From: Macrostomum lignano
Lineage: Eukaryota
Direction of reading: 5' to 3'
DNA: 64,000 nt
Assembly (NCBI GenBank): GCA_002269645.1
Contig: NIVC01002494.1
Coordinates: 104,631 to 168,630 of the forward strand
Of the stretch, positions 6,531-21,949 are shown one piece after another (the first letter of the stretch is position 1; each line of letters begins with the position of its first letter). A model generated the notes under the pieces. It did not search any database. It saw nothing but the letters and a program-made list of their open reading frames with translations, and was not told the DNA's origin. The position numbers and the translations under genes were made by a program.

Positions 6531-8598
6531 TCACTGGATCAGCCACTGCTGTGCAGATACCGTGAAGACAGCCAGAGAGCAGACGGTTCCAGCACTGAGC
6601 CACGCCAGATCCACATTTAGTTGAGCCGACGATTTCACCTGCGTCGAGTTTCGTGGCGACGACTTTGCCGTGGAGTTGGCTGTTGACTTGGCCTTGTTCG
6701 GGTCATTCGTTAAACTTTGCGCCACAGTCGAGTCGAGTTCGCACCATTGCGTTCTGTCTACAGCAAATGGCTCTTTAAGCGATGTCATCGTCTTGGCATA
6801 AATAAAGTGAAGACTAGACTCACTGGACACGTTCGCAGCGGAAATGGCAATCACTGCTATCCACATTTGAGGCTCATTCAGAGCCATATACTGGCTGTAG
6901 ATGTTCACCGAAGATTGGTTGGTGACGGCCAGTTCTGGACAGGAGCTATAGTTACGGCCCTTTGAAGTGGTGCAGCTGTCCCCTGATTTTTCGTAGCGAA
7001 TGCTGTAGACAGGCACTTCTGTTGGCGGTAATTTAGATGCTCATAAGCGTCAAAATAAGTGAAATTTGCATGGCGGCTGCGCAATGGATATTTGGGATAC
7101 TGTTTACTCTTTGAACAGAATGCCAAAGAGTGTGCTTTTGTAACTTAATGGCGTGAAAAATATACATATCGGTACAATTCATATTTCAGCTTGTATTTCA
7201 ACAATCAGCAGAGCTGCTGCAAGCGTTGCACCTACCTGCTTTAGGCGGGAGTAGACCAGACGGATCTTCAACGGGATACCATTTGATCTCAAATATTTTG
7301 CTCGCGTTATTCAAGTTACTTTTATAGATCCACGTAACTTTTTCAGGCACAATACGACGTCTGTCAAAGTTGGGGTCCTCCGCCTGAACTGTCAAAGTGC
7401 CGGCAGACAATTCCACTTGGAGCGGGTACGTGACTTTCACAGTGACATCGTATTGACCAGCTTTCTGTACTGCATTAAGTGGTATCTGGGCGGTGAATAC
7501 TCCGTCACCTGTACGAAGAAAATGCGAGTAAAATGAGTCTTAAATCGTTGTCTGAGAGTAACAGATTTAATCCAGCTACTGAAAGTTTAGTCTTTACTCA
7601 CTGCGACGTTGTTCGAATATACAAAATCGAGCCACTTCCGTGTTGCCTGCTTCGACCACTGCGTACATGCGATACTTGTGTTGAATTTGGGATGTTGGTA
7701 ACAGATACACGTCGACACTGATTGAAGTATCATACTTGACCATTTTTACTTTTTTTGGTGACACTTCAAAGATAGAATCTTTAGGAAGCCAATGAGGTCG
7801 TGCCGTGATAACTACACGCATGTTTGTCGCCGCCTGTCTGCGAATCCGGCGTGCGAGACCGACTGCGAGATTCGCCAGCGTCCACTTTCCACTCTGTTGG
7901 AGTGGCGGGTTTGAGGCAAGGCGATTTCTATTGGTTTAAGCCTAAAAGTTTAATAGTCTTAGTCTTACTAATTAACTGCCCTAATAATTATTTCTATTTA
8001 TGGCTTATCTGCCCCTGAAAAAGCATATTTAAATTGTAGTGAATGGGAAAGTCAGTTTTAGTTTAGTGTAACACACTGTTACAGTAACTGTTAATATTTC
8101 ACTTTCTTTTGTGTTCTACTTTTGCCGTCGTAAAGTAATCCCTCCAGCAAGCGAGAACATTGGCTCATAATGCACGTAATTGGCTCAACTCACCTCAACC
8201 TCTGCATCAGGAATTTGCATTGTCACGGATCCGACTGCAACATCGACTGTGCAAACGGCGCTGCTGCCACCAGAGCAATCGAAAGTCCTACCGCTCGGCG
8301 ACCGAAGCATGAGGCGCAGAGAGTCAACCTTGGCGGGATCGCTTGGCAGAAACAGCGAGAAGACGAGATTGCTGCGAGCGCTGACGTCTAATTCCACCGG
8401 ATACCGTAGGTCAAAGGGAACTTGCCTCGAATCCAGCTGCTTGTCATGCACGTCGCCGTCTGCGGATATTTGCACAAAGACTGGGAAGTCGTTATAGTAG
8501 CCGTCATCAGCGAGATGCAGTTTGCTTGACGCATCGAGCTGGATGCAAAAAGCAGCCAGAAAAGTCATGAAGATTGTGCTGGCGTTTTTTAGCCTCAT
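6531..8598 (-). CDS. 'Headless' CLCA-like protein, copy A (~485 aa): signal peptide, beta-sandwich/FN3-like region, S/T stalk, hydrophobic C-terminus; exons 8598-8194, 7893-7602, 7508-7236, 7018-6531
   Basis: Exon lengths 405+292+273+488 give one open frame with GT-AG sites; colinear with exons 1 and 6-9 of the gene at 43011-47615. Confidence 0.8.
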
Positions 8599-9351
8599 GT
8601 TTAAGAATTCTGTGCAGATAAAAGTTGACAGAATTTCTATGCTGAGCGATGGCTCTGCAAGAGATGAACTGGCGCTGGCAAGCAACTCAGCTCGATACTG
8701 CCGGCTTTAAGCTTCGTGCATTAATTTGAATATTTGATTGTTGTATAAAAGTACTTTTAGACCAAACTCAAAAACATGGCGGCTCGAGCGGTAGCAAGCG
8801 GCAAATAGTCTATGGGCCTGAGGGCGGTCAGGCTTAGAAAACAAGTTCAGGTTGAACTTTTGGAAGCAAATATCAAAGCAGAAAGCAAATTTCATAGAAT
8901 GCCATAGAATGTGACTTTGTTTCTTTTGAATTTTAAGTTAGCGCGTGCGCGTCAACCTGGGACGATTTTGACCACAGACAGTCTGAATTGATTTTCTTCT
9001 GTTCAAATAGAAAGGGATTTTCCGCAATTTTCTGAATGAATTTCCGCAAGCGCTGATTTTTATTAAAGTGTCTGAATTGAAGTTCTGCTTGTTTCTTTTG
9101 AACATGAATTTGCTCAAAATAGGAGGTAAAATGGTGTTTTAACCGCTGTCATTCTTTAACCCTTTTGGTTGTTCTATGAATCAGTAATTCCAAATAATTA
9201 ATTAATAAAAAAATTAATTTTTTACAAGCCTCTGTTTTCCCCATTTAAGTGAAACACGTAGCTAATTTTTTAACTAGAACAATTAGTACAATTTAATTGT
9301 TCAGAATCTTATGATGCAGAAACCCATAGTGCAAAATCCCATGTTGCATGT

Positions 9352-9412
9352 CGAATCCCATACTGCTGCAGGACCTCATGGAGCATGCAGAATCCCATAC
9401 TGCTGCAGGACC
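9352..9412 (+). repeat. Two units of the 37-bp satellite also found at 56826-58047
   Basis: GAATCCCATACTGCTGCAGGACCTCATGGAGCATGCA matches the large array. Confidence 0.85.
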
Positions 9413-19410: not shown

Positions 19411-19878
19411 TAATGTTATATTATTAAGAATTACTGATTTAAGAAACATCCGAAATGAGAGAATAACAGCGATTAATAAAAGTACACCTTGTCATTTTTC
19501 AGCTCTTTCACTACGAAATTCGCTCTCTGCTTTGATATTTGCTTCCCTAAATTCAGCATAAACCTGTTTTCGAAGCCTGACCGTCCTCAGGCCCATAGAC
19601 TATTTTTCGCTTGCCGCTCGAGCCGCCCTGTTTTGGAGTTTCGTCTAAAAGTACTTTTATACAGCAATCAATTAATGCACGAAGCTTTAAGCCGGCAGCT
19701 CAGCAGAATTTCTGTCTGTGGCTGAAACTCCCATGGCTCTGAGCAGAGTACAGGTCGAGATCGAGAGGAGCGGCTTCGCTTCGAGTTGAGCTGCCTGCCA
19801 GCCCCAGTTCATCTCTTGCAGAGCCAACGCTCAGCATAAAAATCTCTGTCAACTTTTATCTGCACAGAATCCTTAAAC

Positions 19879-21949
19879 ATGAGGCTAAAAAACGCCAGCA
19901 CAATCTTCATGACTTTTCTGGCTGCTTTTTGCATCCAGCTCGATGCGTCAAGCAAACTGCATCTCGCTGATGACGGCTACTATAACGACTTGCTAGTCTT
20001 TGTGCAAATATCCGCAGACGGCAACGTGCAGGAGAAGCAGCTGGATTTGAGGCAGCTGGATCCGGTGGAATTCGACGTCAGTGCTCGCAGCAACGTCGTC
20101 TTCTCGCTGTTTCTGCCAAGCGATCCCGCCAAGGTTGGCTCTCTGCGCCTCATGCTTCGGTCGCCAAGCGGTAGGACTTTCAGTTGCTCTGGAGGCAGCA
20201 GCGCCGTTTGCACAGTCGATGTTGCAGTCGGATCCGTGACAATGCAAATTCCTGATGCAGAGGTTGAGGTCAGTTGAGAAAAGTACGTGCATTATGAGCC
20301 AATGTTCTCGCTTGCTGGAGACATACTTTATGATAACAAAAGTCGAAAACAGCAAAAAGCTAATTTACTGAAAGCTACAGTAACAGTGTGTTACACTTGA
20401 ACTAAAGTTTCATATTCACTGCACCAACTTTTTAATATGCTGTTCAGGAACAAAGAAATAGAAATTTTAGGCATCTATGGCAGTTAATTACGAACTAAGA
20501 ACCGCCAAATTTAAGGACTTAAAAATAATGGTAATCGACTCGCCTCAAACCCGCCACTCCAACAGAGCGGAAAGTGGACGCTTGCGAACCTCGCAGTCGG
20601 TCTCGCACGCCGGATTCGCAGACAGGCAGCCTCAAACATGCGTATAGTTATCACCGCAAACCAGTTTGGCATGCTTCCTGAAGGTACTATACTTAAGGTG
20701 AAACCAAACAAAGTGACAATGGTCAAGTATGATACTTCAATCAGTGTCGACGTGTATTTCTTATTAAAGCCCAAAATTCAGTATCGCATGTACGCAGTTG
20801 TCACAGCAGGCGGCACGGAAGTAGCTCGATTTTGTCTATTCCAACAACATAACAGTGAGTAAAGACTAAATATTCAGTAGCGCTGAATTAAAATTGTTAG
20901 TCTCAAACAACGACTTGAAACACATATTACTCATTTTTTTCATACAGATGAAGAAGTATTCACCGCCCAGGTACCTCTCTATGCAGTACAGAAAGCTGGC
21001 CAGTATGCTGTCGCTGTGAATGTTCACACGTCCAAAATGGCAGAGTCTGCCGGCACTTTGACAGTTCAGGCGGAGGACCCCAACTTTGACAGACGTCGTA
21101 TTGTGCCTGAAACAGTTACGGGGGTCTATGAAAGTAACTTAAATAACGCTAGCAAAAAATTTGAGATCAAATGGAATCCAGCTGAAGATCCGTCTGGTCT
21201 ACTCCCGCCTAAAGCAGGTAGGTGTAACGCTTGCAGCAGCTCTGCTGATTGTTGAAATACAAGCTGAAATATGAATTGTACCGAATAATATACTTTCACG
21301 TCACTTAGTTTCCAAAACACTTTGGCATATAGTTCAAAGAGTAAACAGTGCCCCAAATATCTGTTGCACATTTCACTTATTTTGACGCTCATGCGCATTT
21401 AAATTACCGCCAACAGAAGTGCCTCTCTACAGCATTCGCTACCAAAAATCAGGGGACAATTGCGCCATTTCAAAGGGTCGTAGCTATTACTTCTGTCCGG
21501 AACTGGCTGTCACCAACCAATCTTCGGTGAACATCTACAGCCAGTATATGGCTCTGAATGAGCCTCAAATGTGGGTATCAGTGATTGCCATTTCTGCTGC
21601 AAACGTGTCCAGTGCGCCTAGCATACCTTTGTATATTTATGCCAAGACGATGACATCGCTTAAAGAGCCATTTGCTGTAGACAAAACGCAATGGTGCGAA
21701 CTCCCCAACACTACGACGAGCACATCGACCCCGCACAATTCTCTCGACCCGACAGTAACGCAAAGTTTAACGAATGACCCAAACAAGGCCAAGTCAACAG
21801 CCAACTCCACGGCAAAGTCGTCGCCACGAAACTCGACGCAGGCGAAATCGTCGGCTCAACTAAATGTGGATCTGTCGTGGCTCAGTGCGGGAACCGTCTG
21901 CTCTCTGGCTGTCCTCACGGTATCCGCACAGCAGTGGCTGATCCAGTGA
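19879..21949 (+). CDS. 'Headless' CLCA-like protein, copy B (~493 aa); exons 19879-20268, 20566-20854, 20948-21217, 21417-21949
   Basis: Exon lengths 390+289+270+533 give one open frame with GT-AG sites; same exon1/exon6 fusion as copy A. Confidence 0.8.

Follow-up and report, generated by a model that had tools for sequence, protein, structure and literature searches.

A probable lineage of headless CLCA-derived genes founded by one deletion in the flatworm Macrostomum lignano

The window analyzed here is a stretch of 64,000 nucleotides, positions 104631-168630 of contig NIVC01002494.1 in the Macrostomum lignano assembly Mlig_3_7, and contains a cluster of CLCA-like genes set among satellite arrays. 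Two genes of this cluster, named A and B, are headless: they encode the part of a CLCA-like protein that follows the vWA domain, behind the first 53 codons of the full-length gene. Two further copies, A2 and E, are located on other contigs. We consider it likely that A, A2, B, and E constitute one CLCA-derived lineage that goes back to a single deletion, was subsequently duplicated, is transcribed and is kept under selection, with a proposed action in trans on the full-length forms. The comparison relies on a full-length neighbor in the window, gene C, and on the vWA-bearing paralogs F and G, both reconstructed from DNA of other contigs. Coordinates of all features are collected in Table 1.

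Both A and B consist of four exons, every intron obeys the GT-AG rule, and no stop interrupts either frame. Exon-length differences of 15, 3, 3, and 45 nt between the two genes as well as intact reading frames and splice sites had been reported in a first-pass annotation of this DNA. The gene models bear this out, and no disabling change was found in A, A2, B, or E. The hallmarks of a pseudogene (a frameshift, a stop, a lost splice site, or a ratio of nonsynonymous to synonymous substitution rates, dN/dS or omega, of 1 in all site classes) are absent from the headless copies. Over 2.2 kb, A and B share 84% identity; they are arranged head to head in inverted orientation on the same contig, with 11 kb between them, and are thus not haplotigs. 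According to self-BLAST, the duplicated unit comprises the gene together with approximately 300 bp of upstream sequence and a few hundred bp on the downstream side. An internal example of an unconstrained copy is given by the relic of an A-like last exon at 3987-4230, where a 5-nt insertion causes a frameshift in the hydrophobic tail.

The full-length gene C is annotated in GenBank with a 1027-aa product ending at 43011. Pfam assigns CLCA_N to residues 44-305 and vWA to residues 330-490, and the vWA domain matches the human CLCA1 structure 6PYO (1.5e-9). In place of the HExxH motif, C carries YFSQF at residue 173, while the MIDAS motif DISGS is retained at residue 335. Aligned against C by self-BLAST, A falls into two blocks, 8178-8439 corresponding to C 44502-44763 (94.7% identity) and 8440-8695 corresponding to C 47457-47712 (94.1%). 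Likewise, B 19600-20037 corresponds to C 47889-47457, and B 20060-20278 to C 44726-44508. The ends of these alignments place the breakpoints exactly at 8440/8439 in A and 20037/20038 in B.

Consequently, A and B equal C minus exactly 2693 bp, and the missing interval 44764-47456 is the one named in the first-pass annotation. Exons 2-5 and introns 1-4 lie entirely within it, together with the final 30 nt of exon 1 and with intron 5 up to, but not including, its terminal CAG. Exon 1 of C continues for these 30 nt past the breakpoint up to a GTGAGG donor. The presumed connection to the acceptor CAG of exon 6 also proved correct, as the CAG in A and B represents the last 3 nt of C intron 5. The fused first exon of A combines three sources: CLCA exon 1 contributed codons 1-53, the intron 5 acceptor supplied codon 54 (CAG), and everything after it derives from exon 6. 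On the coding level, 1407 nt were removed and 3 added, a net loss of 1404 nt or 468 codons that preserves the frame, such that C residues 54-522 are represented by a single Gln in the headless proteins (...VHDK-Q-LDSR... across the junction). The copy-specific junctions read TTCCCAGTC...GACAAG/CAG in A and GAGAAG/CAGCTGGATTTG in B, and the junction k-mer of the headless copies is GA[CG]AAGCAGCTGGAT. The presumed loss of the whole protease-like and vWA domains holds for the vWA domain only. From the protease-like part about 30 mature residues stay as a stub, including some 10 residues (44-53) of the CLCA_N match in C. On its downstream side, the deletion cut exactly at the exon boundary between vWA and BSR, the next domain in human CLCA1.

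Compared with C the junction is blunt, whereas a 2-nt CA microhomology exists relative to F and G, which read CAC where C has TAC. The event that formed the junction was thus end joining of a DNA deletion. Splicing and a retro-copy origin were discarded: the exon 1 breakpoint has no GT, and the retained intronic CAG and downstream introns indicate a deletion on the DNA level rather than splicing or retroposition.

Only two headless copies had been recognized before, but at least four loci exist. E and A2 share the junction base for base and lie in sequence contexts that differ from those of A and B. As the junction is identical in all four loci, the deletion arose once, and the single origin first proposed from A and B alone is thus supported. 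A partial protein identical to A (P0026) is encoded on a further contig and probably reflects assembly redundancy. Members of the family were sampled partially, by word-indexed protein searches, and all statements on clades and nearest relatives hold among the genes sampled.

The headless genes are transcribed. For A, B, and E, the four-exon models agree with GenBank proteins at exact identity; B is called as a gene in the record of the contig, and C and the distant full-length paralog D are annotated in GenBank, too. The annotation of Mlig_3_7 was derived purely from RNA sequencing by StringTie, TACO, and a de novo transcriptome, with open reading frames (ORFs) called by TransDecoder, and novel transcripts below 0.5 RPKM (reads per kilobase per million) were dropped (PMC5730564). 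An exact match to such a transcript-only annotation implies that transcripts with this splice structure were assembled at the A, B, and E loci.

A comparison of dN/dS between A and B had been suggested as a check for selection. The ratio is indeed below 1 (0.58 with the NG86 method; 0.72-0.79 by maximum likelihood, ML, with p values of 0.09-0.12), but it is not decisive. Among all headless copies, whole-gene omega ranges from 0.51 to 0.71 with NG86, with bootstrap intervals below or touching 1. The full-length pair C-F shows the same values as the headless pairs (0.59 by NG86, 0.73 by ML). Since omega of C-F is as high and the whole tail is fast-evolving, plain pairwise dN/dS is uninformative here; it was dropped as the deciding test, and a site-partition test was used in its place.

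In the partition, codons were split according to whether their amino acid is shared in C, F, and G, a criterion that makes no use of the headless copies. Where the three full-length genes agree (253 codons), omega among A, B, and E amounts to 0.34 (likelihood-ratio test against 1, p = 8e-6), compared to 1.24 (not significant) at the 150 variable codons. Different amino acids among the headless copies occur at 31 of the 253 invariant but at 77 of the 150 variable codons (Fisher p = 3e-17). In contrast, synonymous differences are distributed evenly, with 33 of 253 and 20 of 150 codons (p = 1). This result stands in each exon, and exons 3 and 4 alone yield an omega of 0.36 (p = 0.004). In the reciprocal test, the trio C, F, and G reaches an omega of 1.67 (p = 0.02) at the sites variable in the headless copies, which indicates that headless and full-length genes share the same hypervariable positions.

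Intactness of the frames leads in the same direction. Exonic indels number 5-6 per pair and are all multiples of three, compared to 10 of 47 (approximately 21%) in introns and flanks. Given the substitutions counted and the transition/transversion ratio of the introns, a neutrally evolving sequence would remain stop-free with a probability of about 0.01 for each pair and about 0.001 for the tree of three copies. The claim that the copies are maintained by selection is therefore supported by the omega of 0.34 at conserved codons, the in-frame indels, and the stop-free frames. The sequence comparison indicates purifying selection at codons that are also constrained in the full-length paralogs. 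A different pattern is seen in the stub: residues 23-53 are identical in five vWA-bearing proteins, while the headless copies show 1-6 replacements. This orphan N-terminal stub has been freed of constraint. The diverged stub and the frameshifted relic both fit a selection that acts on the tail only.

Looking at the family as a whole, Pfam CLCA_N also matches D, F, and P0014, another distant paralog. D has HFSQY at residue 171 in place of HExxH and ends with a GPI-like (glycosylphosphatidylinositol) hydrophobic C-terminus, and P0014 reads FFSQY. The HExxH motif is gone from every M. lignano CLCA-like paralog examined, while the vWA MIDAS is kept. With YFSQF, HFSQY, and FFSQY at this position, the members represent catalytically dead CLCA-like proteins, and the whole M. 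lignano family looks like a set of pseudo-proteases. Paralog G shares two cysteines, a 2-residue insertion, and a short stalk with the headless copies, and it is their sister group in the last exon. The parent of the headless lineage was thus G-like rather than C-like. A gain of a disulfide after the deletion (FC at 225-226, WC at 415-416) was considered and discarded, because the vWA-bearing G has both cysteines.

G itself has lost 75 residues in frame inside exon 3, where the Cys-rich portion of the protease-like domain is encoded. As assembled here, G furthermore shows a +1 shift in exon 2 within a CTCTCTC run, possibly an assembly error, and an insertion of approximately 5 kb that contains an N gap. 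A tail-less, D-like derivative of 278 aa, P0017 (BOX15_Mlig015751g1), is located on the contig of E. It runs from mid exon 3 directly into the conserved 3' flank of the family (6313-6453, 3768-3908, and 22133-22273 in the window). This derivative, too, reflects a large deletion within a gene and illustrates the structural lability of the family.

That the copies have diverged since the junction arose, as assumed in the first-pass annotation, is correct with respect to divergence. Simple descent, however, does not hold: the copies are gene-conversion mosaics with a 5' block homogenized across the family. Promoter and fused exon (exon 1/exon 6) are 90-99% identical in all pairs, full-length genes included. 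Family-wide, introns reveal 62-87% identity versus 90-99% in the non-coding 5' flanks together with exon 1/exon 6. The identity of the 5' block may reflect a gene-conversion hotspot or regulatory constraint. Between C and F, divergence is 0.056 in exon 6 versus 0.19-0.29 in later exons. Intron 1 is 93% identical between A and E and 99% between E and A2, and B reaches about 74% or less against the others. The stretch from exon 2 to early exon 3 of A is nearest to C (87-94%; 91-94% in exon 2) and forms a conversion patch of approximately 450 bp. In the remainder, exon 3 onward, the headless copies are mutually nearest, followed by G, and in exons 3-4 all four form one clade with no vWA-bearing member inside. 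Such patchy gene conversion complicates dating.

Several points weigh against the view of a selected and functional one-deletion lineage. The patchwork indicates that gene conversion is active among the copies and with the full-length paralogs. Hence, functional donors could have resupplied some of the conserved residues, the junction could have recombined onto diverged paralogs, and some of the divergence among A, B, and E could predate the deletion. Whole-gene omega among the headless copies, computed by ML with GY94, is 0.72-0.92 and not significantly below 1 (p 0.09-0.7). Support for transcription exists on the level of assembled transcripts, and the gene identifiers were found neither in the main texts searched nor in the searched supplements of three M. 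lignano transcriptome papers, which provided no tissue or expression data. Word-indexed protein searches and an exhaustive HMMER search of 1.8 billion representative proteins retrieved no homologs outside M. lignano. With respect to function, the protease-inhibitory role of the ID domain in human CLCA1 is not transferable to flatworm full-length proteins that lack HExxH, and the AlphaFold2 model of A discussed below was built on a family alignment of 14 sequences and is of moderate confidence.

Among the alternatives, the headless copies might be functionless transcribed relics whose frames were kept by conversion from full-length paralogs, or which are younger than they appear. The clear conversion patches (A exon 2 nearest to C; promoter and fused exon at 90-99% in every pair), the overall ML omega of about 0.7-0.9 and the structural lability of the family, exemplified by the 75-residue deletion in G and the tail-less D-like derivative, are in line with this explanation. 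However, exons 3-4 and intron 3 have diverged by 16-29% from C, F, and G and thus had no recent donor, and precisely there constraint persists with an omega of 0.36. The even spread of synonymous differences over conserved and variable codons contradicts it as well, and so does the preservation of frame in at least four loci through 5-6 indels per pair. Conversion should also have repaired the stub, which is diverged in the headless copies only. Finally, a true relic is found in the neighborhood, and it is frameshifted. We therefore judge this explanation unlikely.

Alternatively, the junction may have arisen once and then spread by non-allelic recombination or conversion onto diverged full-length paralogs, in which case most of the divergence among A, B, and E would be older than their beheading and the selection signal would stem mainly from the time as full-length genes. 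The 5' block with the junction has diverged by 4-9% versus 8-30% in the 3' parts, tree topologies differ by segment, and intron 1 of B is at most 80% identical to that of any other copy, all as expected from such a spread. On the other hand, low 5' divergence is a family-wide feature that is also found among full-length genes, so that nothing about it is specific to the junction. The four headless copies group together in exons 3-4 to the exclusion of vWA-bearing genes, and duplication is more parsimonious than moving a 2.7-kb gap independently three or more times. Persisting constraint without a recent donor and the absence of vWA-bearing genes from the headless clade led us to rate both conversion scenarios low, and the spread of the junction is in our view quite improbable. 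An artefact of assembly or haplotypes, with A and B representing a single locus or a wrongly collapsed full-length gene, is scarcely credible, for in spite of the high redundancy of Mlig_3_7 and the A-identical partial protein P0026 elsewhere, the two genes are only 84% identical, many indels apart and head to head on one contig, E and A2 carry the junction in different contexts on two more contigs, and transcript-based models match each of the A, B, and E loci exactly.

A one-deletion lineage thus remains the preferred reading, and its history may be pictured as follows. One genomic deletion in a full-length CLCA-like gene would have fused exon 1, after codon 53, with the final three nucleotides of intron 5, sparing promoter, signal peptide, and all downstream exons and introns. 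The resulting tail-only gene would then have been duplicated, including the inverted pair A/B, and the copies would have swapped patches by gene conversion.

Assignment of the headless genes to CLCA follows from descent rather than from domain content. The features that define CLCA proteins are missing in A and B: Pfam detects neither CLCA_N (PF08434) nor vWA, and the deletion took away the position of HExxH. No Pfam or NCBIfam model recognizes the headless proteins, and A alone reaches no CLCA model. In terms of activity, the metalloprotease and vWA/MIDAS domains, which define the family and bear its known activities, are the ones that are lost. However, promoter, signal peptide, and the whole post-vWA part, including a mucin-like stalk and a hydrophobic C-terminus, are shared with C, F, G, and D; the post-vWA region of A and B is 72-77% identical to its counterparts in C and F, and introns are shared. 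Matches to TIGR00868 (hCaCC) extend past the vWA domain in full-length paralogs, up to residue 704 in D, 729 in P0014, and 634 in F. On these grounds the headless genes are CLCA derivatives by descent. To call them a new protein class, as first proposed, overstates the case. They form a lineage-specific group of truncated paralogs whose database entries are listed as hypothetical or uncharacterized proteins.

The predicted product starts with a hydrophobic h-region at residues 5-24 followed by a small-residue site, L-D-A/S, according to a hydropathy heuristic, which would fit a cleaved signal peptide. It has 7 N-glycosylation sequons and a stalk with 30-35% Ser/Thr, and the same type of heuristic reveals a C-terminal hydrophobic segment (461-479) with KSSAQ upstream and only QQWLIQ behind it. 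This composition suggests that the product is probably a secreted, GPI-anchored or otherwise membrane-tethered surface glycoprotein. The AlphaFold2 model of A displays three beta modules between disordered ends (see Table 1 for limits and predicted local distance difference test, pLDDT, scores). Best Foldseek matches are tandem FnIII/Ig-like arrays (contactin FN1-FN3, E 2e-6) with low TM-scores; an fn3 profile match in A or B was not obtained from Pfam at E <= 1, and among the PDB matches no CLCA structure extends past the vWA domain. Modeling and hydropathy are thus consistent with the proposed anatomy of beta-sandwich or FN3-like domains, stalk and GPI-like tail, whereas an fn3 match on the sequence level is missing.

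In human CLCA1, the domain order MH-VWA-BSR-ID-FnIII-like has been described by cryo-electron microscopy (bioRxiv 10.1101/2025.10.18.683246). By position, we infer that the three modules of the headless proteins are equivalents of BSR, ID, and the FnIII-like domain. Among the parts of the protein, the BSR-like module stands out as highly conserved; the hydrophobic tail is conserved as well, the FnIII-like module is intermediate, the stalk is variable, and the ID-like module (157-283) is hypervariable. Variability tracks these domains. A concentration of variable sites in loops is not supported, since 37 of 151 strand and 33 of 179 non-strand residues are highly variable (p = 0.22), and in the ID-like module both strands and loops are hypervariable. 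At sites variable in the respective other group, omega of this module is 1.2-1.7 in headless and full-length genes alike, and this pattern of substitutions suggests diversifying selection. The Ca-binding motif DNGAGAD...DG of the ID is present in P0014 and degenerate in C, F, G, and the headless copies. Like the vertebrate CLCA family, the flatworm family comprises both GPI-like and true transmembrane tails, the latter in P0014, where a transmembrane segment is followed by a cytoplasmic tail of approximately 55 residues.

Structural data on human CLCA1 offer a starting point for a functional interpretation. There, the vWA domain covers the hydrophobic outer face of the BSR, the ID is in contact with each of the other domains, the FnIII-like domain clamps back on the protease domain, and the extreme C-terminus drives oligomerization (bioRxiv 10.1101/2025.10.18.683246). 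Given these contacts and an oligomerizing tail, a free protein consisting of BSR, ID, FnIII, and tail would be expected to co-assemble or compete with the full-length paralogs. As the promoter is almost identical to those of the full-length genes, the tail-only protein would be made in the same cells, where it could join or compete for the complexes formed by the CLCA C-terminal module. It would thereby change the number of vWA-bearing subunits per complex, i.e., dilute the vWA heads, and the hypervariable ID-like module may carry recognition specificity. We put forward this role as partner or competitor, by analogy to CLCA1, tentatively and as one possibility; it is about as likely that the module acts autonomously at the surface or in the matrix. 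The most specific version, in which the tail-only paralogs are dedicated trans partners that tune vWA heads via BSR and tail, with the ID-like module as a diversifying recognition surface of a flatworm-specific recognition or adhesion system, is doubtful at present.

The vertebrate C-terminal cleavage product (CTP) of CLCA proteins may be the closest functional analogy, here hard-wired as a gene. Likewise, it is devoid of the protease and vWA domains and comprises an FnIII-like domain and a glycosylated Ser/Thr-rich tail, through which CLCA1 oligomerizes. However, the CTP results from self-cleavage within the ID and remains associated with the N-terminal product, whereas the headless protein has its own gene, begins further upstream so as to include complete BSR and ID equivalents, and at no point has a cis-encoded N-terminal partner. 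A second comparison concerns human CLCA3P, a truncated, secreted CLCA product that is regarded as a pseudogene, since premature stops leave N-terminal fragments. The truncation is thus opposite to that of the headless genes, which lost the N-terminus, have an intact ORF and show detectable selection. In general terms, the headless genes resemble decoy or dominant-negative paralogs formed by domain loss, in that they would keep assembly and anchoring modules and a near-identical promoter without an effector domain. We know of no stand-alone CLCA tail gene described before.

The role of the part of CLCA that follows the vWA domain, i.e., BSR, ID, FnIII-like domain and tail, is poorly understood. 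To our knowledge, in mammals it has been seen only attached to, or cleaved from, the N-terminal half. If the headless proteins do act as trans partners, the CLCA C-terminal module has an autonomous function. With a stand-alone, multiplied, and selected tail gene beside its full-length relatives, autonomous and modulating roles become testable, in a species for which transgenesis has been demonstrated (PMC5730564). The locus furthermore represents a clean and datable case of domain loss via one intragenic deletion, followed by duplication and concerted evolution, and it makes ancestry clear though databases list domain-less hypothetical proteins. As the finding is lineage-specific, its wider impact is moderate.

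Table 1. Features of the window and related loci. Positions refer to the window unless a contig, locus, or residue range is given.
Feature	Position	Strand	Remarks
Headless gene A (GenBank BOX15_Mlig016394g1)	6531-8598	-	485 aa; gene model and translation
A exons 1-4	8598-8194, 7893-7602, 7508-7236, 7018-6531	-	405/292/273/488 nt
Fused first exon of A	8194-8598	-	contains the junction
A 5' flank/promoter block	8599-8897	-	shared with B, C, E, F at 89-99% identity
Headless gene B (BOX15_Mlig010296g1)	19879-21949	+	493 aa
B exons 1-4	19879-20268, 20566-20854, 20948-21217, 21417-21949	+	390/289/270/533 nt
B 5' flank/promoter block	19511-19878	+	96-99% identical to flanks of C and F
Headless gene E (BOX15_Mlig029287g1)	contig NIVC01000864.1, L001		same junction
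Headless gene A2 (BOX15_Mlig016394g2)	contig NIVC01004909.1, L003		same junction
Relic, truncated last exon of A-like copy	3987-4230	-	about 95% identical to A; in duplicated block 3592-4230, including 3' flank
Full-length CLCA-like paralog C	43011-47615	-	993 aa from MRLKN start; nine exons; gene model
C exons 1-5	47615-47427, 47340-47037, 46500-45968, 45771-45544, 45431-45120	-	
C exons 6-9	44760-44518, 44383-44089, 43995-43723, 43615-43011	-	
C 5' flank/promoter block	47616-47967	-	homologous to A and B flanks
Interval of C absent from every headless copy	44764-47456	-	2693 bp; encodes residues 54-522
Distant full-length paralog D (BOX15_Mlig028759g1)	31673-36941	-	921 aa; 44% identical to C
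Full-length paralog F (Mlig016365g1)	locus L004		vWA-bearing
Full-length paralog G (Mlig013914g1; P0006)	locus L005, NIVC01000302.1		vWA-bearing
ID-like hypervariable module, exons in A	7893-7236		
ID-like hypervariable module, exons in C	44383-43723		
A, disordered	residues 1-51		AlphaFold2, pLDDT below 50
A, beta domain	residues 52-147		AlphaFold2, pLDDT 70-87
A, beta domain	residues 157-283		AlphaFold2, pLDDT 70-87
A, beta-sandwich	residues 293-384		AlphaFold2, pLDDT 50-71
A, disordered	residues 385-485		AlphaFold2, pLDDT below 50
32-nt-unit satellite	1-631, 5615-5870, 22536-23052		
29/30-nt-unit satellite	1839-2267, 5256-5477		
23/46-bp tandem repeat	48160-48417		about 550 bp upstream of C
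37-bp array	56824-58046		33 copies; array also adjoins copy E (L001 1122-2465)
Leucine-rich-repeat ORF (LRR_4/LRR_8)	2539-3126	+	
Two equal-length ORFs	12772-13383, 14624-15235	+	203 aa each; between A and B, 1.85 kb apart
Reverse transcriptase fragment	40218-41042	-	
Intronless ORF with MAC/perforin domain	61030-63588	+	852 aa; Pfam E = 1.5e-13

Regarding the locus itself, the Mlig_3_7 assembly is strongly redundant, with 180 Mb in blocks of at least 95% identity (PMC5730564). Gene B is flanked by two arrays of one 57-bp satellite in opposite orientation, 16344-18107 and 23983-30055, which comprise 31 and 107 copies with 97% matches and account for an extreme GC skew in the composition profile. 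The short satellites recur 3' of every CLCA-like copy and are thus part of the duplicated unit. After the relic, the 32-nt and 29/30-nt satellites follow in the same order as after A, which indicates that the 3' end of the unit was tandemly duplicated. The paired 203-aa ORFs between A and B, for neither of which a Pfam match was found, may be a tandem duplicate. Sequence related to the MAC/perforin ORF also adjoins the headless copy E on its contig.

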